This document shows positions 1-44,200 of a DNA stretch of 60,387 bases, one piece after another. The notes under the pieces are model-generated. The model saw only the letters and a program-made list of their open reading frames with translations. It was not told where the DNA came from and did no database searches. The position numbers and the translations under genes are program-made. The stretch is from Klebsormidium nitens (taxonomy: Eukaryota > Plantae > Klebsormidiophyceae), in the NCBI GenBank assembly GCA_000708835.1, contig DF237467.1, positions 5,770-66,156 on the forward strand. The letters are read 5' to 3'. Position 1 is the first letter of the stretch; each line of letters begins with the position of its first letter.

Positions 1-852
1 CTTGTTGACCCGGGTGTATGTGTGTGGCTCAGTAACTTTGAAGCACTCTCTTGACGCACTGTTGTGGTTCAGCAAACGCAATGCACAGGTGTGAAATATC
101 TCTTTTTGAACAGAGTTTGTGGGTCATATGGTTAAAGAACAGACTTCTTCGAAGAATCCCGTCCTTCTTAGAACATAGCTTTTGAGCCCGTGTCAAATCT
201 GTAACCTTGAAATGTCTGCATGCAAGTTTGTCGTGGAATATTGCTTTCATAGCTGACTTTCTGTAAGATCGTTTCTCAAGAAAACTCGTGACCACATTCT
301 GTAATTTTGCTTCATCTCTTGTAATTCGTATACGTTCTTGTTCTGATCGGAAGCTATGGGGGGTGGGCTGTCTCAAGCCGGAGTATTCTTCCATTTCGAC
401 GAAGCCTCAATATCAGCAGAGAAGCCCGAGTACTTGTTTCTATCTGGGCTGCGGCAGTATGTCTCCATGAAAACTCTGCAAGATGACGTCACTTTAGACA
501 AAAAACTTTGTGTCCCGCTTGTACTCTCGCAGAAAGCGGCCGTTTAATATTTCTTGATAGTGAGTTCCGCTTGTCAAGCTATTGAGCTCAAACGGACAAA
601 CGACGGATAAAGAGAGGGCTTGTGTTTTCCAAAAGCCCTCAATTTGAAACCACGCCAACTGGGCGGGCAGCTATACCCGTTTCCGGACCAACCTCTGTTT
701 CGATACGATTTGTTGGATCAGTCCCATTTCCTTCCTTCAGTCGACCACCCTTAGGAATCTGTGAGGTTAACGAGTGAGTAGATTTCTCATTCAGTGCACT
801 ACAAAGAAACGCATGTAGTTCCTGAACCTCTGGATCCTGTTCATTCCCTCAG

Positions 853-1156
853 GGCCACGCCCACGTCATCACGTGGCTCGTCAACAACGGCGCTGACATC
901 AACGTCATCAAAACGGACGACTGGAACGATTCGTTGCTGCACTATGCCGCCGCAAACGGACACCAAGAGTGCGTCGAAACGCTGCTTTCCGTAGGGGCGG
1001 ATCCGACTGCGACCAATTTCGAGGGGGCGACCCCCGCGGATCTCGCCAGAAAGGGGGGTTACGGTGACCTGGCAAAGATACTGATCGAAGCGGCGTCGGA
1101 CTGGATTCGGCGCGAGTCGTTCCGCATGACCGCACTACAACTGAAGGAGGACGCAG
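853..1156 (+). other. Ankyrin-repeat exon (about 2.5-3 repeats)
   Basis: GHAHVITWLVNNGADINV..DSLLHYAAANGHQECVETLLSVGADPTATNFEGATPADLARKGGYGDLAKIL matches the ankyrin consensus. Acceptor ccctcag ends at 852; donor gtgggt starts at 1157. Confidence 0.92.
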
Positions 1157-4100
1157 GTGGGTGAGCTTTTGGATTCGCCATCGAAGTCGAATCAGATCTT
1201 ATAGCCCAGATGGAGATTTCTGCAGATTGGATACACCTGGAAAAGCACTGGAGTACGTACGTCAGTGAAAAACTACTCATGGGATTGAGGTCCTGCGATC
1301 ATGCCGCCATGATTCTTTACGATCTGGCGCCAGATCGCTAGTGAAGTAGAGCTCTCTTGTCTGCCCTTCACTTGCAAGATAATCGCAAACCACATTGAAG
1401 AGAGGTGCTCAAAAAGTGATCGGCCATCACGCAGCAGTGAGAACTTCTATCTTTCTTTGATGTCACCTTCCGTTGTTTACTTTTGTTTGAGGAGATACCG
1501 AGCCACACGGCTGAGTCGCGCAGAGCACGACAACCACTCAATCCTGGCCCCTGAACCAACCCATCAAGTCACTTCTCTCCGGTCTCTTGACTTATGTAGA
1601 TTTTCTGATGACCCCCCCTCACCTTGCAGAGATGCACAACGACGGTCTGGGCAGCTCCTTCCGGCGCGAGGTGGCGCAGCTCGACCGGATCCTGAACGAG
1701 GCCGCTGGGCCACCCCCAGAAGGCGAAAACAACGACCGCCTGAGCACTATCGACGAGAGCGGCAGCAGTTTTGGCACGGGGCCGCACAGCGAAAACAGCG
1801 GCCCGCACAGCGGCCCGATTAGCGGTTCATCCGTTTCGGGGGGGTCGTCCCCCGACTCGCGGCCGCTCTCGGCGGCGTCCCCCCCGAACGAGCTGGAGAT
1901 GGCGAGCCTGGCGCGGGAGTACAACCTGAAGCCCGCCAGCCAGGTGCAGCTAACCGTCGCGGTTAAAACGCACCCGGAGCCCAAACCCGAGGAGGTTAAG
2001 AAGGCGGACACCCCGAAAGACGTGGACAAGGACGTTCCGGAGGACTCGTGGATCATCGCGAACCGGAAAGAGCCAGAGGGGTGGTCTTCCATGCGGAAGG
2101 AACACACACCGGAAGACGAGAGGACCTTCAAAGAGTATATTAACCGCGGGTGGGAGGGGTTGGGAACTGAGGGAACACAACTGCGCAGCGGTTGGCCGCT
2201 GTTCCGCGCATCGGCGATCGTGTGCCAGTCGCTGGGGGTGATCTACATTGTGTGGCGCGCGATCCGCACGTTCAACATCGAGTCGCTGTGGCTCAGCGTG
2301 CCGTTCTACATGGCCGAGCTGGTGTCGTTTATCCCGTCTTTCATCTTTTGCCTCGAGGTGAGCGGTTTTGTGGGCAGATATTTGTCTCGTCTGAAGTAAC
2401 CAAAGTTTGACTTGGCAACTCTTATCGAGAGGAATGTACTCGAAGCGGTTCGACCTCGCGGCAATTCTTGTAATACAAGACTTTGTGCTTCTTTGATTCT
2501 TCTTCTTTGTGCTTCTTGATTCTTCTGCATCTTAAGAAAGCAGTCAAGAATGAAATGAGGAAATGGGTTTTCGAACCTTGTGAAAACAATACGAGTGTCT
2601 TCTCGTAGACGTTGGGACCCGTTTTTTCGCCGCTTTCGACGGAAGTTCTGCAATTTTGGCTTCGGGGTCTCGCAGCAGAGTTCCAAATCAATTCGCTCGG
2701 GACTTCACTGCCGTCAGCATTCACGCTCGACCCTTGACGCAAGTTCTAGTTTGGAGACCTCTTTCGTTATCAGAGGAGTAAGAGTGACATGTCCCATTCG
2801 CCAAGAACTCGCACGTCTTACGACTCTTTCTAACTCCCCTCCCTCTCTCCCCCAGGTCTGGTGCCCCGCATACCGCCCCCCCCGCAATCTCTCCCAGATG
2901 GACGGACTCACCGAGGCCGACTACCCGTCGGTTGACATCATCATCGTCTGTTACTCGGAGCCCGTAGACATCGTGGAAGCCACCGCTTGCGCTGCGCTCA
3001 ATCTGGACTACCCCGCCGATAAGCTGACGGTGTATATCTGCGACGACGGCAAGAAGGACGAGATGCGCGCCATGGCGCACAGACTGGAGTTCCAGCGCCG
3101 CTACCTCAAGCGCCAGGCGCCGCTGATCTACGTCAGCAGAACCAAGGTGGGTGACGTCAGCGGGGGCGCGTTGGGGTGGTTTCGGTTCGCTCTTCTCGAG
3201 CGTTGCGTCTGTTGGTAAAATGCCATATTTGGTAAAATGTGGTGGTCAAAGGGTCGGGTCGCAAGAAAGATACATTAAGAGTCCGCTTGTCATAACTGTT
3301 GACGCCAGCAGGACTGACGCAGCAGCAACGCAAACTGGTCAGTGGACCTTCTAAGAGACGCTCAAGAGTAGCAAACTTTCAACGTCTCTTTTTTAACCTG
3401 GCCGCAGGTCAAGGGGATCTCCCACCACGCCAAGGCCGGAAACATCAACAACCTGCTCCTCAAGGGGGGAGCACGTGGCGACTTCGTGGTCGTTTTTGAC
3501 TGCGACATGATTCCCAAGCGGGAGTTCCTCCTACGAACAATCCCGCACTTCTTTCGGACTAAGCCTGGCGGGGGCTGGGAGCAGAAGAACCGGGCCGGCT
3601 TCTTGCAGACTCCACAGGCAAGTCATACGCCCGAGAATAGTTGACCCTGACGAGCTGATTGTGCTCTGTGATTTTGGGTCGAGTATACTCGCTGCTGGGC
3701 TCTTGTTTAAAGGATGACCGCATTCTCGGTTTGAATCTTCATAAATTCAGACGGGGCTGCTTCAAGTCTGCCTTAGGAGGCCAAAACAAAGAACAGTGCT
3801 CGACGTCAAAGGTTTTGTGCCTTCGCCCACAGCAGGTGCAATATGCAGAAAAGTTCGTCACTTAAAAAATCGAGTTGCCCAATTGCAGCTGCAGCGAGAT
3901 GCACAACCCGTCTAAAAGAGCGAAGAAACTTACAAACTAGGTTTGAAGCAGACGGCTGACGCAATTTGTTCGACAGGACTTCTACAACTTGGAAGCCAAC
4001 GACCCGTTCGGCAACCGCGCCCGCTTCTTCTACGGCCCCATGATGCAGGGCCGCGACGGCGTGGGCAGCTGCCCCTGCGTCGGCACAGGCGTCATCTTCC

Positions 4101-7100
4101 GGCGCGAGGCGCTCATCTCGATGGGCGGCCAGGTGGGCAGCCTGATGACGTTATCCTGACGCGGACATAGCACGCGTCGTGTGGTTCAACTCTCCAGGCA
4201 GTTCTTCCGCAGAGTTTGCGCTTGGGTTTCCCATCTAGTCAGGCAGTGGGTTATACCTGCTCCGCTGGCAGAGCTTTTGACGGTTGGGAAGAATCTCAGT
4301 ATGCTGGTAGTTGCTGGCTCGTTACGCAGAGGCACAGGTCAGAGTGGGATTCAGCAGCTACATTTGCGGTCACTTTCAGAGCAATCAATCTTGCTTCCAT
4401 CAGTAGCAAGGTTCGAGCACGGATATAACTGCACTCTTAACGCATCTTTCGGAAGGGGCTCCCAAGCTGCTTGCCCAGAGCCTCCTTTGCGTTTTTCACT
4501 CCTTCTAACTCTTTCAACCGGACTTTCAAGCCTCAAGCTCTTGTGAAACGTCTCAATCACCGCGTTCTTTCTCCAGGCGTACGGCAGCATCACGGAGGAC
4601 TACAACTCGGCGATGGGCCTGCTGGGCGGCGGCTTCTCCAGCATGTTCCTCAACGAGCTGCTCATCTTCGGCATCGCGCCCGATGACGTCATGACCGTGC
4701 TCACGCAACGTCAGCGGTGGGCGATGGGCAGCCTGCAGATCCTCTGCCTGGACAACCCGCTGCTCAACGGGGGGCTCACCATACCGCAGAGTCTCCTCTT
4801 CTTCCAGGTAAGGATTCAGAGTCCAAGATCTGAGCGCTGACAACTAAAGAAGTGTGAGGATTTCAGGAACCTTGACCAGCGGTGTCTCGAGGGAGCTTCA
4901 AAGCGTCGCAGTTTCATATCGTTCCCCGCTTTTGGCCTCAAGCATTTTGACAGGCGTTTGGTTGCGAACGGTCACTGTTGATAAGGTATGCTTCGCAAAA
5001 TGTCAATGGAATCGGTACTTTCTGCAAAGCTTTAAAGTCTTTACCTGGAATGCGGCCTGTACTGCCCTATCCGATTCACGATGGGCCTTCACAGGGTTCC
5101 AATGAGGCTCCGGCCACTGCCTCTGCAACTTCTCAGAACCGGTCGTGAAGCTCCTTCACTTTGAGTCCCTTTAACGCCATATTCCGCGACCAATACTAAC
5201 CGAAGCAGCTTAAGCAGCTTCAGACACTGCGGTTTTAGACTAACCATGACCCACTTTTTCTTCTGCAGTCGTGCATACAATACACTCTGGCGCTGCCGAC
5301 TCTGCTGATGGCCCTTGTGCCCATCCTGTTTCTGTTCTCGGGCATCTCGCCAATCCACGCCAAAGTGCACGAGTTCCTCGTCTTCTTCATCGGCTACTAC
5401 CTCGCCAACCGGATCATGCTCTTCCTCGCTCACAGGTAAGCGGGAAACGGCCCTTGTCAAGTCTAAAACTCACAGAGGTTCTTTATGTAACCATGGGCTC
5501 TTTGAACGAAACGGAACAGCGGAACGGCCGCGGGTGGGGATAGGAGGGAGATCGAGATTGCTCCTGCGTTTTTTCAAAGAGGATGCCCAAAGCTTGACAC
5601 ATGCCGCATCTGCAGGCTTATCACCGTTTTGTTCTTTGATAAACGTTCCGAAGTAGCATTGGAAAGCTTTGCATAAGAGGGAACGTTTTCCACCGAATCA
5701 TACTCGCTCGATGGATGACAAAAGTCAAGTCCCTGTTGGCTCGACACCACATTTGGACATGTTCTTTCCATGTGGGTGCCCAACGCTTGTCACAGAGAAC
5801 AAGTGAACGTTTCAATATCGACGCATCTTAGAGGCGACCGAAATTAGGTCCCTGCTTCCAAGGCCTTGACGGTAGATTTGTACCTTTTCGTTCCAAGGGG
5901 TGCTAAAACAAAATGGATAATTGCCATGGCTATACTTTACGTCTGAACGTTTTCGTTCCAGGGGGGTGCCCAACGCGGGCATGGAGATGTGGCGCGGGTC
6001 GCAGCAGTGGGTGTGGCTGGTGCCCAACAACCTGGTGTCCTGCTGGAAGGCGTTCTCCACCGAGCTCGCCATCTTCAAGTTCTTCAAGCTCGGCAAGGTG
6101 AGCGCGTAACGCGTTGCCGTCTGCTTACATGGGCGGCGGATTTTGACGACCATCAGCAAGTGCTCAGTTTCGGCGTCAGAAACTTCCTCTTGTCATACTG
6201 TTGGACGCGCCTGCGGCTCCGGATTTTTTAGAAAGTGCCCGGATTATCCGTGTACACCACCCTTTTGAGAAGACAGTTATGGGTACCTTGCCCTTAATGG
6301 CTACTCTGACACGGGCATCTTTTGTCGTTCAGCTCGGTTTCACCGTGACCAACAAAGACGGTAATGACGACTGGAGGGAGGCCTTGAAAGTGACGTGGCC
6401 CTTTTTCACTTACTACATCGGGATGACGGCAGGGATCATCTATACCATCGTGTTTGTCGGCATCGGGAGCTACGGCATCGAGGTAAGAAGTCTGCCGCCC
6501 CGACTGCGTGTCTCAGGAACTTTGCTGGCCAGTTTCTTCCTAAAGAGCAGGCGTGTCGTTGTTACGTGGAATGTACCTCTTAGGAAAACACCGAGCTACT
6601 TGTCTGATTTAAACTCTTCCTTGTGGTCAGACCGCGCAGCGCTTGAGTCTTGGGAAAGAACTGGCATCGCATGAATCGTCACTGACTGAACGCGATCGCA
6701 CCGAGTTGACGCCTTTTCTTTTCCTCTTGCTTTTCTAGGCTGCAGCTTCCCGAGTTGTGGCTTTCGCCTGGGGGATCCTCGTCTGCATGTACATCTGGCC
6801 GGTAAGAGGCCCCGACCGCTCCGCTCGATCTGAGGTAACATTCAATCGACGGCATCACAGAATGGCGTCTACCAGTCCCGATGCTGACTTTGCCCGTCTG
6901 CTATACGCACAAAATGTAATTTTGGCTTTTTCTTGTTATGAAACGCGACTCAAATACTTCTCGCACGAATCTCGTCACGATGTCCAAAGAGACGTTACCA
7001 GAGGAATCAGAGATTACGGGAGCATGCCCCATATTCTGGCGCCAACGGGCGGCGCTTGCAAGCCGCACTTGTCCTTTTCTTTGGTCTCCCCCTTCGTTTC

Positions 7101-9605
7101 GTGCCTTCGTTCTACTTTCCTTCCATCACGCCTGCAAAATCCTGCTTAGCTTACGACCATCATAAAGGTCTTGCTTCCGCTCGTAGGACACCGTTAGACA
7201 GACGCCGCCTCCACAAACCGCCTTGCATGCGCACGTGCTGTCGTCGATCCCTGCAAGCAATGATATCTCAATATTTTCTGATAATTTCGCAGTCTTCTTG
7301 CTTTCTACAAAAGAGATTCATGAAAAGCAGGCGAGCATCTAAATCTCAGGAGAGAGTTGACCCTATTGACCCAAGAGAGAGAGAAACTCTGTGTGAGCAG
7401 AGGGAGCAAAAAGGAAAACAATGACGAGGCTCCCCCTCTTACTGAAATGCCTTCCGGTTTCTCTTTTCCTGCTTCGCAATCTACGTTGATCAGTCGGTGA
7501 CATCCCCCGGCCTAAATATTTCTGCAGCCCATCGAAGGATCCCCGCCGATCTCCAATATAAGCTGGTTGCATGGGGCCAAGCACACGGGCGGCGCCGTCA
7601 AGTGGGAAAACGACACGTCACTGGCCTCGCCCGGCTCTCACGCCTCTCCTAAAACCCCCGGACCGGCGCGGCGGCTGTCTTTCCAGCGCCTGAAGTCCTT
7701 CGGGCGAATGCCGTCCATCAAGAAGCAAAATGTCGAGGATTTGGAAGGTGAGCTATCACTGGGCGTCGGCGTGTTTCGGACGTCACTTTGCCGACGGCGT
7801 CTACACATTCCGGTCAGCAATTTGACGAAGATATCGTTTACCGTGATGTTTGAAAGAAAAGGTGTCACGCTCACCACAACGAACACCATTCTCACGTTTG
7901 CAAGGTTGAGTGTTCGACGCACTAACTAGTACATTGTTCTGGTCGTAGGGCTCTCACCATTCAGAGCTAGGGACCAGGGTCAAATCATGGGCAGTCTCGT
8001 GCGTTCGGAATGACTTGATCGGGTCTAACTTGGAACAGGGATCAGGCTGGCTCGTGACTCGTAGATCTGAGCCAATGAACGGTGAAACAGCCCTGTCATT
8101 CTAAACCCTGCCAATGCTCTCTTACAGCGCCCCAGATTGCAGAGGCGATCGCGATCGTGCCGTCGACTCCCGGCCGCAACGGCCTCCTGATGACACGTCA
8201 GCAAGTAATCCCGATCGAGGAGCGTGAGCTCAGCCTCCTGTACCAGATGGTCCGCAAAAACGAGACCGGGGGACAACCGGTCGTGTCTCCGGCCTCAAAC
8301 GCCCCCGCAATGTCCCCGGTTGAGCTCCCCCGGTCAGCAATTCCCGAGGAAGAGGAGCTGGAAACGGTAGCGGTAAAGAGCCCGGTTGTTACCCCGCGCG
8401 GGAGCCCCACCGAGAGTGACACGTCATCGGAGCGGTCGAGCAAGATGGAGCAGTTCAAGAAGATGCAGGGCATTAGCCTCATGTCACTGGACGGCGCAGC
8501 AGACGTGGCGGTAAGCGGCCGCGTAATAACGCTTATGGCTCCGCTCTTTCAGCGGGCGCTGGAAGTAATGGAATCGGTTTACAGCCAGAGGTGGGGACCG
8601 TCCGATTGCCTTAGGTCTGTTCTGAAGCCGTTTACGCGCGCTCGGCCGCTATAGCACCGTCAGACTCTGGTCGCCCTGCGGATGAAAAGGGCTGTGGATT
8701 TGGAACTTGGAAAGTCTTCCTGACTTTCTTCCTCGCGCATCCAACTGTTTGTATCGAAGTTTTCCCTTGCGGATAAACGATGCTCCCTTCCAATCCAAGG
8801 CGTCACCTCGAAGCAACACCTCTGCTTGAGCCCGTTCAAACAATATGCACTCATCTCGTCTTTCGTTTCTTGCCAGATCGACATCGCCGACCAAAGCCCT
8901 GAGAACCCCATCGAGGACCCGCGCGCCGCGCACGCGCGCAACCCGCTCGGCGCGCTCCTCACCGGCCGCCGCGTGGGGCCGGCCGCGCTCAACGCCCCGG
9001 CCGCGGCAAAAAAGTCGCCCATCTCTAGGGCACTGGACGCGCTCGCGCTCCCGACCCCACGCGCACCCGGGCCTACTGCGCGCGCGGAGCCCGCGACGCC
9101 CGTCATGCCGTCGCCAAAGGTCGCGACGCCCCCAGTCGCGATCGAAGAGTATTACTCGCTCGTGACGCCGCGGCTCCGCGCGCGCACCTCGCCCCAGCTG
9201 CGCGCGCGCATCTCGCCGCAACTGCGCCCGCGTTCGGGCGCGAGCACGCCGAGGAGCGCGCGCGCGTCGCCGCGCGTGAACAACCTGGAGGAGGTCGTCC
9301 TGGCGTCGCCGCTGCTCCTCGGCGCGGGCCGGAAGGAGAAGGACTGGCCGAGCGACAACGAGAGCGAGGGATTTGAGGAGTTCAAGGAGAAGATGACGAC
9401 CCGGGCAACGTACATCGACCACGCGAGCCTGCACGCGCGCCCGGTGTTTGAGCTCAAGGCCGCGAAAACCGCCGGGGGGGAGGGCATGCGGCCCCACGTG
9501 ACATTCGTCGTGGTGAACACGCTGCTTCTGGCCGGTTTCATTGCTGGGGGGGTGGTTTACGTGTTCAAACTGTCGCTCGACAGCAGCTGGCTGGGCATTC
9601 ATTGA
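853..9605 (+). CDS. Ankyrin-repeat / BcsA-type cellulose-synthase-like GT2 processive glycosyltransferase, 5'-incomplete, at least 1255 aa
   Basis: Exons 853-1156, 1630-2357, 2856-3146, 3408-3617, 3977-4132, 4577-4807, 5269-5435, 5962-6097, 6333-6482, 6739-6801, 7528-7747, 8128-8510, 8877-9605 (3768 nt, all phases compatible, stop TGA 9603-9605). Motifs: YIVWR..AE (N-terminal TMs), PSVDIIIVCYSEP, LDYPADKLTVYICDDG, HAKAGN, FDCD, QTPQ, SITED, QRQRW, FTVTNK, plus several TM segments. The start codon was not located, and an extra small exon in 6802-7527 cannot be excluded. Confidence 0.9.
9165..9236 (+). repeat. Three imperfect 24-nt coding repeats (TPRLRART / SPQLRARI / SPQLRPRS)
   Basis: Read directly in the last exon of the GT2 gene. 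Confidence 0.75.
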
Positions 9606-11413
9606 CGTGTTGTACCGGCTGGATGGTCACGGGTTGCTGCCGTTCGCTAAATAAAAGGCGCCTGATGACGTGATAAAAGGCGGAAGAGATAGACAGGCGT
9701 TGCCACGTAAGGATAAAGAACGGATGAAGCAAAGAAGGTGGTGCTTGGGACTCACTAATAACTTGGTTTCCGTCAGCGAAAGCTGGAAACTTTACCATAA
9801 ACTTCGTTAAGCACTAGCAAATTTATCTGAGTTGAGTCGATCAAGTAAGTGATTCGAGGTGCAGACTGACGTCCCCTTATCACTGCGGGCGTTGCATCCG
9901 CAAAATAAACCCGTCAACTACTAGACATCTGATCATTTGAGGCTATTTAGTTGAACCACGTAGCTTCTGATCAAAGTTGAAACCAAGATTGTGAAGGTGA
10001 ATATATATTCTAGGTCCAGTTTCCATTTCCGTCAACACGGCGTACGTCTCAATCAGAACCAGATTGGTTGAATCGTAAAGAATTGGATAGAATCCAGGAT
10101 CGAGGAGCTGCATGCGTTCAATGTGCAACTTGCGCTCGCGCGCATGTATAGGTCGCTGTATCAACTTGCCGCAGAATCACCGAATGCAGCTCTAATTTTG
10201 GAGTTTGTCTTTCAGTGTACAAGCAGCTGAGCATCTGTCGTACATACAATCTCGTTAAATGAGGTCGAGCTCATGGCCGTCATGTGCGGTAGTTGCCAGT
10301 GCCGGCGCATTAGTACAGCGCCGCTAGCTAGCTAGCTGCACAATGTCTCACTGAGTCAGACTAGCTTCGGTACCGCTGACCGCAATCGTTTAGCTTAATA
10401 CATACATACATCACATTGTAAAGCCCGTTATAAAGCCCCATGCTTCGGATACCGAAGCGCCTGGAGCTTGATTGAGTACATGGGGCCGTTTTTTCCAACA
10501 AGCTAGCTGGTTGACCTGCATGCAAGATCTTATCGAGATTTCGAAACGGAAATGAGCCGCGTCACGAGTACTAAATCGATTGACCTAGCTACACCTCTAA
10601 CCCTTCAATCCAACCAGTTATTGACCTTCAGACTACCTATAGTCGCGTCATTTACTGGCTATTTCCGCTTGAGTCTTTCGTTGACCGTACGTCGCCGTTA
10701 TTAGCAATCACATCATGGCATCCGATCTTGCAGATCGCGATGATGCTCAAATTTGTAGACCGTCTCGACGGTCTTTTGGAGATTCAAAATATGCAAATGA
10801 TTGAATTGCGGCGGCATGGCAGCCATGTATCATTCATGGTATCAAGCACTACTCAGTAGCCCGCCAGACAAAGATGTAAATGCAAATCTTGAAGGGGCCG
10901 CCGCGCGCGACACCGGCGCCCGACGTCGTTCCGCTCAACGCGGTGAACTAAAATCAAGGCGGCCAAAGTGCATGGGTCGGACTTGGCAACGGAGAGGCAA
11001 ATGAAGTTAGAGTCGGGCTTGGCGAGCATGCATAGTTGCTTAACGTACTTGTGATGTTTAATCTCGACGAAGATTTGGAATGCATTCCAGTTCATGGGGG
11101 AACTGCACAGACCTGTGTGCAGTTCTGTCACGTCCGACCTGACGTCAAATGTGCTAAGCTGATCTACCCATGACTCTCAGTCTGCCCTTGCCTATCCTAG
11201 CTCAACCAAGCAATTCGCCGCTGCGAGAACATTCTTTTTGAGAGACAGTCCTACCTTCTGAGGAACGTCTAAGGAACTTGATCTATACAGGACTGCCATG
11301 GACGAGAATGCCTCGACCTCAAATGTGAAATCTATACATGTCAAGGAGGTGTGCTCGTTTGGTTGCCTCAGACTGAGTGTGTCTCATTAGCAACCAGACA
11401 GAAGCTGCACCGT

Positions 11414-38200: not shown

Positions 38201-41200
38201 GTGTGGAGGCATATGCAGGAATTCCAGCCTACTAGCTGCTTCTTTGTTGCACGACGCAAGTGCTTCCGCTACCCCCAGTCTGCGGCCATGATAGTAATGA
38301 TCATGCTTTCTTTCTGCTTGCAGCTTCTGAGCGAGGAGGTCTTCGACTTTTCGCGAGGGGAGCTTACGCAACTCAAAATCAAGGAGCTCAAGAACTCGCT
38401 CAACAGGTGAGTGCCGAGATCCCAACTGCAAGGCTGTCCTGGATCGGACAGGCCTCTCCGAAATTATTGTTTGGTCAAGGAGATTGCAAGGCTGGTAATT
38501 GCCTTTTTGAGATCAACTCTTCCTCAGTACTCAAAGCAGCTTTTCAGCGGGGTTTACATGCCAAAAGCCCAATCACGTATTGGGCGTCACGATTACTCTC
38601 GAAGAAGTGGTTCCGATGAGAGCTCTACTTTTGTACGTTTGTGCGCAGCGAGTTCCAGCGCATCCACGAGCTGTGCATGTACGTGCTGTCGGCGTCCACC
38701 CGGCCGGAGCTCATCCGGGCGACCCTCGCAACGCTGCACGCCTTCCTCTCCTGGATCCCGCTCGGCTACATCTTCGAGTCGAACCTGGTGAGACAGTTGT
38801 GATGAATCAGGTCAGAAAGATGTTGACTTCGATTACTTTCAGCGGTTTGGAATGAGTCGTTCGGCGGCACTTGCAAACGAAAGTTGGACGTTCAAAAGAG
38901 GTGCTTGCTTGGACGAAGCGGAGTACTTTGTCGAGTTCGGTGGTTACGTTTGGAGCAGTCTTGTTGTCCAGACTAAACTCGTACAACTAATTGCAAGTCG
39001 AGTCCCTTACTCCCTCAGTCAAGTACTTTGGTGTCGTAGCAATAACTAGTTACTTTGTCATGCGGAAGTTTCCAATCTGAGGAACCCTGTGCGGAACGTG
39101 ATCATCCTCTATCTTTGGTTGTGCAGCTGGAGATCCTCCTGAAGCTGTTCCCTGCACCCCCCTTTAGAAACCTCACTCTGCAGTGCCTCTCCGAGGTGAG
39201 ACCCGCATCTCAAATTCCTTCACCTTTTCTGGTCATCTGCTCTGCATAGAGTAGCACTAAGCACTAAGCTCAGGATTCAGCGTCTTTGGCACACAAGGCT
39301 CGCTGTGCAATTGTTGGAGCGCTTGCAGACTGCATCATGGGACATCCAGCGTGTGCTTTGATTGGCCTCACTTTAATCAAGTCAGCAACCCCCCCTGGGC
39401 CGTCATTCTTGTCACATTCCGCTTCCCATTATCTGCCTCGATACAGAACAACTTAGCATGAGCGACTGGCGCTCCATTCCAACGCAAAGGGCAAGCAACA
39501 CTGTTGCAACTGACGAGACACCAGACCACTGCTGAGACGATCCAATTCAGACGCAGCCACTCCTGCGTTGTAAAGTGGCACACTTTTTTTGGGTCCGAAA
39601 TCGTTTGGCAAGAGGAGAAATGGATTCTTTCTTGCAGGTGGCGGCCCTGAGTGTGGGCGACTACTACAACGAGCACTTCGTGAAGCTATACACCATTTTC
39701 ATGGCGCAGCTCCAAGGCATCCTGCCCCCCGGGACCGATATCCCAGCTGCATACGCCGCTGGCACGGACGATGAGCAGGTAGACTCTACATCCGTCCGAC
39801 CATCGCTCTCTCGAGAGTGGTGTTTCAAGCCGGCCTGAAGAGTCGGCACCACTAGTTTTCAGACTCCAAGCGGATGTCGACTTGTTTATAGTACGTGCCA
39901 AGTTGTCCGGGATTGGTGCGAGTCATGTAAAGCTCTAGATACGGGTCTATTCGAGCGAGCACCTGAGTTCAGAGTGTCAATCCTGACCGGACAGACTGGC
40001 GCAAAGTGACAGTGGAATAGCTGACCGCAAGTTCAGAATAAGCCCCTGAAGTTCAAAGTTGAGAGTCTGCTTCCGAGCCCAAGTTGTGTTTGACGGTTGT
40101 CTCACGCTTGCTTGTCTCGTTTCTACAGGCCTTCATCCAGAACCTCGCTCTCTTCTTGACCGGCTACTTCAAGGTGAGCCACAAAGTAGCTGCCAACGAG
40201 AGGTTCCGTGGCATCGAGGTTTGAGCACTTGGCACATCAGACCGGGATCCCGTGTGCTTTTGTCATCGTATGTGTTCCGAAGCTTTTGCACGCTTCTGCG
40301 CCTTTCTTTATCAGTCATGTCTTCTCAAGCTCCCACTTGCCTCGTGAAACTGTTCCGCATGGACCCTTTGATGTCAGAAGATGAAACTATCCTCGCTCTT
40401 CAGCGATCCGGAACCCCTTCCTTTTGGATCTTTGGTGACTTACGTCATCACCTGTTCTATTCTGTTCTGCAGTCTCACGTCGCTGTCCTGGAGGTGAACC
40501 CCGAGACGAAGCCAGGCCTCCTCTTGGGCCTCGACTACCTGCTCAGCATCTCATACGTGGAAGACGTGGAGGTCTTCAAGGTATACTGATCTTTGAGTAC
40601 TCTTCCCTTTCTTTGTTCTGACATTGTGTGATGAATATTCGCAGCTCGCTTTGAAGTGTTTGCGCCCTTGTTCCGGGGCTGTCCGTATAATACTAAGAAG
40701 ATTACGTGTAAGTTTCCAACAGCGGTCAGAAGAGGTCCCCAACTTTTGCACACCCGCTTTCTTCGCTTGGCGTGATTGGCACCGCTTCCTGCCTCCCAAT
40801 GCCTTTACATGCTGTCCTGCGAAGAGAACACGTTAGCTGCTGATGCCAACGCCTACCGACCTTGCTATTTACGCAGCAATCTCAAGCCGAAATCCGCCAC
40901 CTTGCGTGAAAACTGACACCACACCTCTTCTCGCAGGTGTGCCTCGACTACTGGAACATCCTGGTGTCAGACCTCTTCCAAACGGAAGCCAATGCGGAGC
41001 CGGCCGCGGCGCCGCTGGGCCTGCACATCCCGGCGGCCAATGGTGCGGGGGGGCAGACGTCGGAGCGCAAAAAGCTGTACTCAGTCCCAATGTCGAAGCT
41101 GCGGCTGTTGTTCATCAGCCGTATGGCCAAGCCGGAAGAGGTGCTGATTGTGGAGGACGAGAACGGGAACATTGTGCGCGAGACGATGAAGGACAACGAC

Positions 41201-44200
41201 GTGCTGGTGCAGTACAAGGTGAGCTCAGAGAACGCTTTTATGATCGGCTCCTACTGCGTCAAAAGTCTCTGCAAAGAAGTCCACCATCTTCACTCTTGCA
41301 ATCACGTGAACTGTGTCAATGGCTTGTTCTGTTTGCTGTTGTGTGCTAGACGTCCGCTGATGCTGCAGGTTGGTCCTAATGCAATCTTCAGATTGTCACT
41401 CACTTCGTGGTCTGGAAAGTGGTTCGAAGACGGTGTGGAAGGGCAAAGGGCTGAAAGGCTAGGACACTTTACAGCAGGAAAAGATGAATCTCCCATCTTT
41501 ATCCAACTATCGACGCTCAACTAACGCTCACTCAAAGTACCCGCGATGATGTGCTGAAAGCTTCGGCTCTTGCCCTTGCAGATTATGAGGGAGACGCTTA
41601 TCTACCTCTCGCATCTTGACCACGAGGACACGGAGCAACAGGTGAGGTTCTAATACGCAACGGGATCGGTTCTATGCAGACACGTGGTTTTCGGTCTTCT
41701 TGCTTTACGCATCTCTTTTGCACTTTCGCAGTCAGTCTGGATAAACCCATCAGCATCGTTTTGAATTTGCACACATAGTGTAGAAGTTCGCTCTCACCAG
41801 ATTGGTTGAAGAAGCTATCGTAAGACTCTGACGGCTTCATCAATAGTGAAGAGAAGCCGTTCTTGAGCAATGGATATCAGACCTGGTGACAGACTGTACA
41901 TCTGTGAATCGGAGGAGCGAGCGTGCATTTTGCTGTCTTTCCATGCTCGAAGGCTGGACTAGAGCGAAACAAAGCTCAACACCATTTGCATTGGGAAACA
42001 AGAGATCTCGACGGCAAGAAAGCCGCTACTCGTCATCCTAACTTTGCGGCGGGAAAACCTGTTCATGTCATGACGTGTCTACGGATCTACGACTTCGCCC
42101 TTTGTCACACGCAGATGCTGAAGAAGCTGGCCCTGCAACTGAACGGCAAGGAGTGGTCCTGGAACAACCTCAACACGCTCTGCTGGGCCATCGGATCCAT
42201 CTCGGGGTCCATGCAAGAAGACCAGGTGCGGCGAAACCAGCGTCCAAAGGTTAAAAAGGACCTTTCTTCTTAGTATGTCAACCTAGGTACCTCTACGAGC
42301 TTCTGATCGAGCTTAGATTGGATCGGGGCGTCATAGGCAGCTCTTTATGGACAATAAGGTCCTCCATCCTATACTCCGTTTGGCCAGGGCGGCTCAATTG
42401 TTGCTCAATAGCTGGGCCGTAGACTTCACATTCGGGTTACTTGGACTGGTATCTGCCGTCTAAATTGAAAATTGAAACAGTCGTCCTCAGTTGCAGGCCC
42501 AAATTTGAATCTGGAGGCTCTGGCAGGGCTGTTGAGGTCTGGCAGTACTTCAATGCTGACACGCACAGTTTTACTGGTGCAGGAGAACCGGTTCCTGGTG
42601 ACCGTCATTCGAGACCTCCTCAGCCTGGTGGAAATCACCCGGGGCAAGGCCCACAAGGCCGTCATCGCCAGCAACATCATGTAAGCCGCGGCCGGCTCTC
42701 ATCCTGAACGGAAAGTCACTATCGTGTGTATTAGAAATTGATGCGACTGAGTGTTCAGGCAGCTGGATTTTAGCCCTGCAGCACGCATGAGAGCTCAAGT
42801 TCGCAAAGCGTACTTGAGACAATGTTACACGTGTCAGACGACCTTGATGGAACGTTGTTGGAGGGGGTCCTTCTTTCTGCAGATTGGCCTCTTCTCTCGC
42901 AGTCTTTAGAGACTGATCGTGTGGGCAATAATGGTTTAGCCTCCGTATCGATCAGCCTATTCAATGCTCTTCTCTTCCAGGGCACTTCAATGTTATCTTT
43001 GAGTCAGTTCGTAGCCCAAAAGGTCAAAAACTATGTAGCCTTTGCTTTCAAAAATCAGCCCAATCTAAGGACGCTCACTGAACTTCTCGCTTGGAAAACT
43101 TGTGCCGTGCAGGTACGTGGTGGGCCAGTACCCCCGCTTCCTGCGCGCCCACTGGAAGTTCCTCAAGACGGTCGTCAACAAGCTCTTCGAGTTCATGCAT
43201 GAAACGCACCCCGGAGTGCAGGTGCGCCCATCGGTTCCACTTGTCACCGTCTCCCTTCTTTCCTTCTTTCTGGACTTTCTGCAGGAAATATAGCAGGTAT
43301 TGTACAAGGCAGATATGCATGCTAGCCTTGGGCTGTGTGCTCGGTTTCCCTGTGCCACACTCGGTGCGGTCAGAAAGTTTTTTTCGTTGATTCAGACCGT
43401 GCGTTCGGTTGCATTGCTGGATGTGAGGACTTTGAGCAAACGGCTCGGCGTTTGACTATGGGCCTGTCTGACTCGTTTTCATTGTTTAGATGAGACCCAG
43501 AGCCGCAAAGATATTGAAGACGATCATCTGTCCTGACGGCGCAGTTGCTCACTCTTGCAGGACATGGCATGCGAGACGTTTCTGAAGATTGTCCAGAAGT
43601 GCCGACGAAAGTTCGTCATACAACAAGTGAGATTACGTTTGTTCTTTGTATCCACGCCTCCCTTTCTCTTATAGCGACATCTCGTGCTTCTATGTCTGAC
43701 CGTCCCTTTTCGATTGACAACAGAGCGGCGACGGATGTGTGGTGATATCTGGTCCATATACAACTTTTTCAAGTCAAGTCTTGATCCCATAGCAGCCAAG
43801 ACTTACAGTAGCTCTGTCACCAAACTGCCAACCTCTGGGGCTTCTCTTCGGACTTCCGAAACCTCTTGCCTTCTTTCCAGGTTTTATATCAAAAGGTCGA
43901 GTTATTGCTTCAATTCCGCTATTGTAGTTGAGCAGACGGCAGCTTACAAAAGCATCCATATTATTGGCAGGCATTTCCTCGTTTCAAAAACGGATGATTC
44001 TTTTAAATAACGGCTCATTGGTTCAAGTGGGTTCCAATCATGTGGCTGGCTTGTCTAGGTGGGTGAAGCCGAGCCGTTCATCTGCGAGCTGCTGCGCGGG
44101 CTGGCGACGACCATTCTGGACCTTCAGCCGCACCAAATACACATGTTCTACGAGTCGGTAAGGCTGCTGGTCGGGTTGGCATCCGCGCGTATTCGGCAAA

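Follow-up and report, generated by a model that had tools for sequence, protein, structure and literature searches.

The question raised by this locus is whether an ankyrin-repeat exon and a series of cellulose-synthase-like glycosyltransferase family 2 (GT2) exons, which follow each other near the left end of a 60,387-nucleotide (nt) stretch of the Klebsormidium nitens genome (contig DF237467.1, positions 5,770 to 66,156 of the forward strand; the whole stretch is referred to below as the window), are parts of a single gene, and what kind of synthase such a gene would encode. A sequence-only reading had proposed that the two are joined in frame, and that they represent a possible new combination of ankyrin repeats with a cellulose synthase (CesA). 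The results presented here show that they are parts of one expressed gene, which very probably encodes a multi-pass synthase of the BcsA/CesA type, a probable beta-glucan synthase, in which the ankyrin repeats form a loop behind a first transmembrane (TM) helix, TM1. The ankyrin-bearing (ANK) synthase is a real and conserved variant, already annotated in databases, in which a core of the CesA superfamily carries a lineage-specific accessory domain.

The joint between the two parts and the exons on its two sides are listed below, with residues numbered as in the full-length public protein P0054. RNA contigs from four runs, which come from four studies (X1, X2, X8, and X12), were aligned to positions 1–6000 of the window.

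853–1156, plus strand: ankyrin exon, residues 106–207, with the last 2.5 of about four repeats and a capping helix.
1156/1630, plus strand: ankyrin-GT2 joint (donor 1156, acceptor 1630), across a 473-nt GT..AG intron.
1157–1629, plus strand: the intron itself, 473 nt, skipped by RNA contigs of X1, X2, and X8.
1630–2357, plus strand: linker and TM2 exon, with a disordered linker to about 2120, the motif RGWEGLGTEGT at 2145–2177, TM2 at 2199–2264, and TM3 from 2292.

The ankyrin exon ends in ...GACGCAG, which is followed by the donor gtgggt in phase 1, and the next exon is preceded by ...accttgcag and starts with AGATGCAC. The split codon G+AG specifies Glu (E207), with no stop in this frame up to 2357; within the fused protein the ATG at 1632 is an internal codon, for Met208, and the TGA at 1162–1164 falls inside the intron. 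In all of these details, viz. the coordinates of the donor and acceptor, the phase, the rebuilt GAG codon and the positions of the TGA and ATG, the sequence-only reading was accurate. RNA that crosses the joint, for which it had proposed to look, is also found. Two contigs, of 1407 nt in X1 and of 849 nt in X2, bridge the joint, their shorter arm being 255 nt; in a bridging contig of X8 this arm is 22 nt, and in X12 a contig stops at 1156 and its loose end is the first 14 bases of exon 2. The RNA depth over positions 1201–1600 of the intron was zero in all four runs. The RNA support for this joint is far beyond chance.

The complete gene model consists of 13 exons within positions 853–9605 of the window (plus strand), comprising 1255 open codons and a TGA stop at 9603–9605. 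Its exons have a GC content of 63% (GC3 0.71–1.0), and its introns, which are 235–726 nt long, have about 50%. Besides 1156/1630, five further joints are present in the alignment to positions 1–6000, and the remaining five were found in all four runs (X1, X2, X3, and X8) of a second RNA alignment covering positions 5900–10400, where one contig is 3272 nt long. Overall, 11 of the 12 joints of the model were recovered in RNA from five runs and four studies. The joint 3617/3977, which belongs to an intron with a GC donor, was not listed in the four runs aligned to positions 1–6000, where one contig stops exactly at 3617. The public K. nitens RNA runs contain 0.26–0.62 of the sampled words of 853–2357, which is approximately the share of the exons. 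The remaining parts of the gene are as follows:

1–852, plus strand: 3' part of an upstream intron; no open frame, and no RNA depth over 1–800.
2856–3146, plus strand: GT2 exon with the end of TM3 and the UDP-binding DDG at 3042–3050; Pfam Glycos_transf_2 / Cellulose_synt; joint in RNA.
3408–3617, plus strand: GT2 exon with HHAKAGNINN at 3423–3452 and DCD at 3498–3506; joint 3146/3408 in RNA.
3618–3976, plus strand: GC-donor intron, in which CACAG is followed by gcaagt (GC at 3618–3619 instead of GT); the spliced model matches P0054.
3977–4132, plus strand: GT2 exon that finishes QTPQDF and carries CVGTG at 4076–4090; Pfam Cellulose_synt, E 4.5e-5.
4577–4807, plus strand: GT2 exon with TED at 4592–4600 and QRQRW at 4706–4720; Pfam Glyco_trans_2_3, E 2e-7.
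5269–5435, plus strand: exon with TM4 (5290–5346) and TM5 (5374–5430), seen by hydropathy and as helices of the structural model; RNA joints.
5962–6097, plus strand: helical region between TM5 and TM6 with a conserved WRGSQ motif; RNA joints.
6333–6482, plus strand: exon with a loop and TM6 (6402–6464).
6739–6801, plus strand: TM7 exon; TM7 ends at 6795 and is followed by a conserved WPP.
7528–7747 and 8128–8510, plus strand: Ser/Pro-rich tail exons separated by a 380-nt intron; RNA joints; no family found in a Pfam scan.
8877–9605, plus strand: last coding exon, with a Ser/Pro/Arg-rich tail, a C-terminal TM helix at 9501–9563, and the TGA at 9603–9605.
9606–10018, plus strand: 3' untranslated region; the contigs of X1, X2, X3, and X8 all stop at 10003–10018.

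Because positions 1–852 are intronic, the 5' end of the gene (its first 105 codons) lies beyond the window. The loose end of the RNA before 853 translates as GWTALHAAAI(Q), which corresponds to residues 95–105 of P0054, and the ankyrin repeats therefore extend into an upstream exon; the X1 contig continues for about 590 bases further upstream of 853.

The spliced model is 100% identical over 1255 amino acids (aa) to residues 106–1360 of P0054, the NCBI/UniProt entry "cellulose synthase catalytic subunit [Klebsormidium nitens]" of 1360 aa. This entry already carries precomputed Ank and Cellulose_synt domains (Pfam Ank_2, E 2e-22; Cellulose_synt, E 3.5e-25), and hence exactly this ANK-GT2 fusion is already part of the public annotation. 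This identity and the RNA joints bear out the proposal that the ankyrin and GT2 exons form one mRNA with one reading frame. The suggestion that the architecture might be new does not hold, as the same model is public and about 45 database clusters share its layout. The accompanying remark that no ankyrin-type version had been described agrees with our literature search, in which no paper mentioned, in its full text, ankyrin repeats in any cellulose-synthase-like protein; the word ankyrin does not occur in this context in Hori 2014, Yin 2014, Ulvskov 2013, Fitzek 2019, the Feng 2023 preprint, or Blanc 2012. The ANK-GT2 architecture thus appears not to be new as data but to be undescribed as biology. 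The wider GT2 clade was noted in 2012 (PMC3446292), and names for BcsA-like Csl families of streptophyte algae followed in 2023 (PMC9915684).

The catalytic motifs of the protein, DDG, HHAKAGNINN (HxKAGN), DCD, QTPQDF (QxPQxF), TED, and QRQRW (QRxRW), are kept across the clade of ANK-bearing relatives. In 32 sequences, DDG (residues 512–514), DCD (577–579), TED (674–676), and QRQRW (712–716) are invariant or nearly so, with D512, D513, T674, E675, D676, Q712, R713, R715, and W716 completely invariant, and the GT-A signature of BcsA and CesA (D, DxD, TED, QxxRW) is present. The sequence of the core is matched best by BcsA (E 1e-49 over 384 aa), followed by plant CESA (E 2e-22 over about 125 aa) and CslF6 (E 4e-14). 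BcsA is also its best match in fold. In an AlphaFold2 (AF2) model, which covers the K. nitens protein up to residue 935, residues 392–915 match BcsA with a root-mean-square deviation (rmsd) of 3.3 Å over about 547 residues (E 8e-26 in AFDB and 3e-24 in PDB), followed by plant CESA (1e-18), CslF6 (6e-14), hyaluronan synthases (3e-10), and chitin synthases (2e-7). The model has a BcsA-like fold, its GT domain being flanked on either side by TM helices. By sequence and fold, the protein is a BcsA-like synthase of a non-plant type, in agreement with the sequence-only reading, which had spoken of a non-rosette glucan synthase. No PilZ domain (PF07238) was detected by Pfam in P0054 or in any member of the ANK clade, whereas this domain is present in the BcsA matches, and P0054 has no Pfam match to a RING zinc finger. 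The plant-conserved region (P-CR) and the class-specific region (CSR) also appear to be absent, judging from the compact GT domain (456–745). The protein in this respect differs both from BcsA proper, which is marked by PilZ, and from the rosette-type plant CESA, marked by RING, P-CR, and CSR.

When the protein is compared with BcsA of known structure (Rhodobacter sphaeroides, 4HG6/4P00; Escherichia coli, 7LBY/9B8V), the two share the GT-A domain with DDG, DxD, TED, QxxRW, and HxKAGN, and the TM helices that flank the GT domain of BcsA and form its translocation channel have predicted counterparts in the K. nitens model. In contrast to BcsA, a Pfam scan of the K. nitens protein gives neither PilZ nor a signal of a BcsB partner, and only two TM helices stand immediately before the GT domain, where BcsA has four. 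The protein reads DCDM, QTPQDF, and CxGTG (CVGTG) where the bacterial enzyme has DCDH, QTPHxF, and FFCGS, and it has in addition TM1, the ANK loop, a long low-complexity tail, and a C-terminal TM helix. With plant CESA the protein has the VGTG-type motif in common. Plant CESA/CSLD (RING, P-CR, CSR) and the CesA proteins of oomycetes (PH), red algae (CBM48), and tunicates (GH6) belong to the same superfamily and follow the same principle of a lineage-specific accessory domain on a processive GT2 core. However, the accessory domain of the K. nitens protein sits inside the chain, as a cytosolic loop that follows a TM helix, and not at a free N-terminus.

This placement follows from the layout of P0054. 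A short N-terminus (residues 1–24), which would lie outside the cell, is followed by TM1 (about 25–47), the basic stretch KRVKSRKGK, and, at about 60–195, four ankyrin repeats with a cap, modelled by AF2 with a local confidence (pLDDT) above 90. Pfam scores at residues 67–160 are far above the cut-offs (Ank_2, 80 bits versus 27.3; Ank, 61.8 bits versus 21.1), so that P0054 carries tandem 33-residue repeats above the Ank thresholds; the ankyrin exon taken by itself is matched by Ank_4 (E 9e-16), Ank (E 2e-14), and Ank_2 (E 1e-12). The modelled region superposes on a designed four-repeat ankyrin protein with TM-scores of 0.87–0.91 and an rmsd of 1.5–1.7 Å. A lineage-specific disordered linker of about 170 aa follows (residues 200–370 approximately; pLDDT below 50 for most of 233–354), most of which is missing in relatives (24% occupancy in the family alignment), the linker being short in most species. 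TM2 (397–418), TM3 (428–452), and the GT2 domain (456–745) come next, and after these the chain would pass through four TM helices (753–771, 781–799, 870–890, and 895–915), a Ser/Pro-rich low-complexity tail of about 400 residues, and the C-terminal TM helix (1327–1347). TM1 and the basic residues behind it are present in every full-length family member examined. As this conserved helix precedes the ankyrins, these form a cytosolic loop between TM1 and TM2 that is tethered at both ends; they are not an N-terminal module comparable to the plant RING or the oomycete PH domain, as had been supposed. In the family alignment, conservation of the ANK region (mean identity 37%, occupancy 93%) equals that of the TM regions, and W129, H135, A137, G153, and A154 are invariant.

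Some additional features of the layout may be mentioned. The sequence RGWEGLGTEGT (residues 379–389; R-x3-G-x-G-x2-G-T) just ahead of TM2 hardly varies within the ANK clade, and we know of no counterpart of it in BcsA or plant CESA. The C-terminal TM helix (window 9501–9563) is also found in Nannochloris, Pseudoscourfieldia, Chlorokybus, P0058, and P0064. In some relatives the TM helix before the ankyrins is preceded by a large ectodomain: P0064, P0058, and P0070, the nearest relatives of P0054, have 450–700 residues before it, of which P0064 has a signal-peptide-like start, and a Pfam scan found no family in the ectodomains of P0058 and P0070.

The distribution of the fusion was examined by searching exon 2 against 1.8 billion representatives and by a profile search, with many of the family members coming from metagenome or transcriptome assemblies. 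The exon 2 search gave distant matches, carrying Ank as well as GT2 Pfam domains, from Nannochloris and Pycnococcus/Pseudoscourfieldia. The profile search gave about 55 clusters, most with Ank plus Cellulose_synt/GT2. About 45 protein clusters with Ank and GT2 come from core chlorophytes, Pseudoscourfieldia/Pycnococcus, Chlorokybus, and the chytrid Boothiomyces; the genera represented are Nannochloris, Picochlorum, Micractinium, Chlorella, Scenedesmus, Symbiochloris, Pseudoscourfieldia/Pycnococcus, Chlorokybus, and Boothiomyces. They include P0069, a "Cellulose synthase" of Chlorella sorokiniana that carries ANK. The fusion, for which the sequence-only reading had advised a wider search, is thus recurrent in green algae and a chytrid. 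Several relatives consist of one ORF on a contig that is barely longer (e.g., P0024, 1202 aa on 3968 nt), and such contigs are probably transcript assemblies.

In quick trees of the TM-plus-GT core, in which some branches are long, the ANK-bearing proteins form one clade (SH-aLRT 94–98) that broadly follows the green-algal groupings. Within it, Klebsormidium groups with Chlorokybus and two transcriptome sequences as a streptophyte-alga subclade, the core chlorophytes form another subclade, and Pseudoscourfieldia and two Boothiomyces proteins make up the rest. A sister clade without ANK consists of Zygnematophyceae (Mesotaenium, Closterium) and the fungus Gonapodya. Members that seem to be without ANK (P0049, P0057, P0060–63, P0066/67, and others) were not taken as true ANK-less proteins, as their GT domain begins within about 45–240 residues of the start; most probably these models are truncated at the N-terminus. 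Among prokaryotes, the core is closest to a group of cyanobacterial proteins (P0085, P0151–P0158; e.g., of Nodosilinea, Acaryochloris, and Leptolyngbya), about 800 aa long, in which GT2 is combined with PF13581 (HATPase_c_2) as a different accessory domain and ankyrins are absent. They score 290–375 bits, in comparison to about 170–220 for PilZ-BcsA, and are sister to the whole eukaryotic group (SH-aLRT 100). No land-plant protein was present among the 120 best core matches. Feng et al. (PMC9915684) describe CslP and CslO as BcsA-like Csl families that streptophyte algae have and seed plants lack, CslP being absent from all land plants and CslO occurring also in non-seed land plants; judged from the published description, the K. 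nitens gene probably belongs to one of these families or lies next to it.

Two observations concern particular lineages. The Boothiomyces proteins P0074, P0076, and P0086 have the TM-ANK-GT2 layout and group with the green-algal clade (P0074 and P0076 on the tree, P0086 by search and Pfam only); these chytrid copies could have arisen by horizontal transfer between alga and chytrid or by ancient retention. Nannochloris has, besides g07156, three closely numbered paralogues (g07741, g07738, and g07735; P0048, P0052, and P0053), which look like a local tandem expansion and lie on contigs of about 1.12–1.14 Mb, probably the same region in different assemblies.

With respect to its activity, the protein would be a processive, membrane-translocating beta-glucan synthase using UDP-glucose, with a beta-1,4-glucan (cellulose-like) polymer as its most likely product, an assignment that we favour to a modest degree. 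One indication comes from P0082, on an ENA metagenome contig (L001, 5478–11345), in which a glycoside hydrolase family 9 (GH9) domain, a TM helix, ANK, and GT2 occur in one ORF. The GH9 domain is split over two adjacent ORFs of the same strand, with its N-terminal half in the ORF just upstream, and the contig probably represents a GH9-TM-ANK-GT2 fusion from a picoeukaryote whose genome is gene-dense. The position of GH9 before TM1 fits an N-out topology, which would place the cellulase-type domain outside, and an extracellular cellulase on the chain of a relative points to a beta-1,4-glucan product. An external cellulase role is filled by KORRIGAN for plant synthases and by BcsZ for bacterial ones. 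P0054 itself has no GH9 Pfam match, and only about 24 residues precede its TM1; the ectodomains of P0064, P0058, and P0070 occupy the place that GH9 has in P0082. The GH9-fused proteins of Coccomyxa C-169 and Chlorella variabilis, compared here by description, are likewise green-algal CesA-like GT2 proteins of a non-plant type; they differ from the K. nitens protein by their GH9 domain, which the ANK clade holds in P0082. In Coccomyxa and Chlorella, GH9 is joined to a non-plant cellulose-synthase-like domain and cellulose was predicted (Blanc et al. 2012, PMC3446292).

Certain points weigh against this reading of the protein. The assignment of the product is drawn from homology and one GH9 fusion, the suggested docking of the ankyrin loop (see below) from the arithmetic of a model score, and the first 105 residues from the public model and the RNA loose end. 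The ESM Atlas attaches the automatic label Chitin_synth_2 to a related cluster, and CesA-like relatives are known to make mixed-linkage glucan, beta-1,3-glucan, or arabinoglucan (PMC9915684). Klebsormidium also has plant-lineage CesA/CslD-like genes (PMC6566377), and the ANK-GT2 gene therefore need not be its main cellulose synthase.

The alternative that survives best is that the fusion is real but its product is not cellulose, being instead a mixed-linkage or beta-1,3-glucan, a heteroglucan, or a polymer of N-acetylglucosamine. Besides the Atlas label, the BcsA-like GT2 proteins of eukaryotes include the fungal mixed-linkage glucan synthase Tft1 and the moss arabinoglucan synthase (PMC9915684), cellulose is reported to be scarce in Klebsormidiophyceae (PMC10762512), and CxGTG and DCDM replace the bacterial FFCGS and DCDH. 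However, TED, QRxRW, and the fold ranking favour glucan synthases, well above hyaluronan and chitin synthases, Pfam gives Cellulose_synt and no chitin synthase family at E<=1e-4, and a clade member is fused to an endoglucanase-type GH9 domain. Further, the GH9-fused Coccomyxa relatives have been read as cellulose synthases in an alga that is stained by Calcofluor and sensitive to cellulase (PMC3446292). We consider a non-cellulose product a serious possibility, but not the expected outcome. Chitin synthase as the primary reading was rejected on motifs, fold ranking, and Pfam.

For the ankyrin repeats, we favour a fixed cytosolic platform over a loose tether: packed on the synthase, it would serve in regulation or assembly and would be functionally comparable to PilZ in BcsA or, in plant CesA, to the N-terminal region and the P-CR. 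The AF2 model of the Klebsormidium protein has a mean pLDDT of 76 and a global score (pTM) of 0.78, with 165 residues at pLDDT below 50, whereas residues 1–800 of the Nannochloris orthologue, which is without the long linker, gave a pLDDT of 84 and a pTM of 0.86, the confidence being high throughout TM1, ANK, and the short linker. As about 240 residues floating freely would hardly allow a pTM above approximately 0.7, the ANK region should have a fixed position on the cytosolic face, and these scores suggest that the loop is packed rigidly against the synthase core. Such a position would favour a regulatory or assembly role over that of a flexible docking arm. The sequence-only reading had envisaged a docking or oligomerisation module, with a possible link to cytoskeletal or trafficking partners. 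Ankyrin repeats are generic protein-binding modules, other CesA lineages bear N-terminal partner-binding modules, and in Klebsormidium the repeats are followed by the disordered linker, all of which would suit a docking arm. Nevertheless, TM helices tether the repeats on both sides, the linker is short in most species, the score of the Nannochloris model implies that their place on the core is defined, and a partner is not known. A flexible docking arm is the less likely reading in our judgment; the cytosolic placement of the repeats, which formed part of the same proposal, stands.

Two other explanations can be dealt with briefly. That the locus holds two genes, an ankyrin protein ending at the TGA 1162–1164 and a GT2 protein starting at the ATG 1632, is prompted by an in-frame stop just past the donor and an ATG 2 nt into exon 2, but three runs bridge the joint, a matching loose end occurs in a fourth, intron depth is zero, orthologues hold ANK and GT2 in one uninterrupted ORF, and the public model joins both; separate transcripts, the outcome that the sequence-only reading had named as fatal to its proposal, are refuted as the main form, and two genes are highly improbable. 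Weaker still, and practically discounted here, is the idea that ANK-GT2 is a novelty of Klebsormidium only or a gene-model artefact spread through databases, for although many database members are automatically annotated, it is contradicted by independent RNA contigs in K. nitens, by continuous ORFs in Logan and ENA contigs of other species (probably transcript assemblies), and by the monophyly of an ANK clade that broadly tracks the green-algal groups.

The synthase from K. nitens bears upon a broader issue. The only such genes that early surveys detected in chlorophyte genomes were CslA/C-like (PMC4023592, PMC3797821), orthologues of land-plant CesA are restricted to Zygnematophyceae (PMC6566377), and the genes that make cellulose in chlorophytes and basal streptophyte algae are not settled. 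For these the ANK clade provides a concrete and testable candidate, a delimited group of BcsA-like synthases of the green lineage with intact motifs, a membrane-tethered ankyrin loop and, in some, an outward GH9 domain, in which a possible regulatory domain stands at the place of PilZ in BcsA and of RING/P-CR in plant CESA. As the gene sequence and its domains were already public, the value of these results lies in the defined anatomy and distribution. A more far-reaching proposal, which we regard as possible but unlikely, is that the TM1-ANK-GT2 clade is the long-unidentified cellulose synthase of the linear, non-rosette terminal complexes of chlorophytes and early streptophytes, that it originated from a cyanobacterial GT2 before the chlorophyte/streptophyte split and was later lost towards land plants, and that its ankyrin loop regulates the synthases or arrays them in rows.

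The surroundings of the gene in the window offered no cell-wall context: ten neighbouring ORFs of at least 140 aa were scanned with Pfam, seven of which had no match, and the others gave exportin-1 repeats and a weak DEAD-box helicase. The exportin-1 (CRM1) exons, at 40059–41521 on the plus strand (Pfam CRM1_repeat and CRM1_repeat_2), are unrelated to the synthase.

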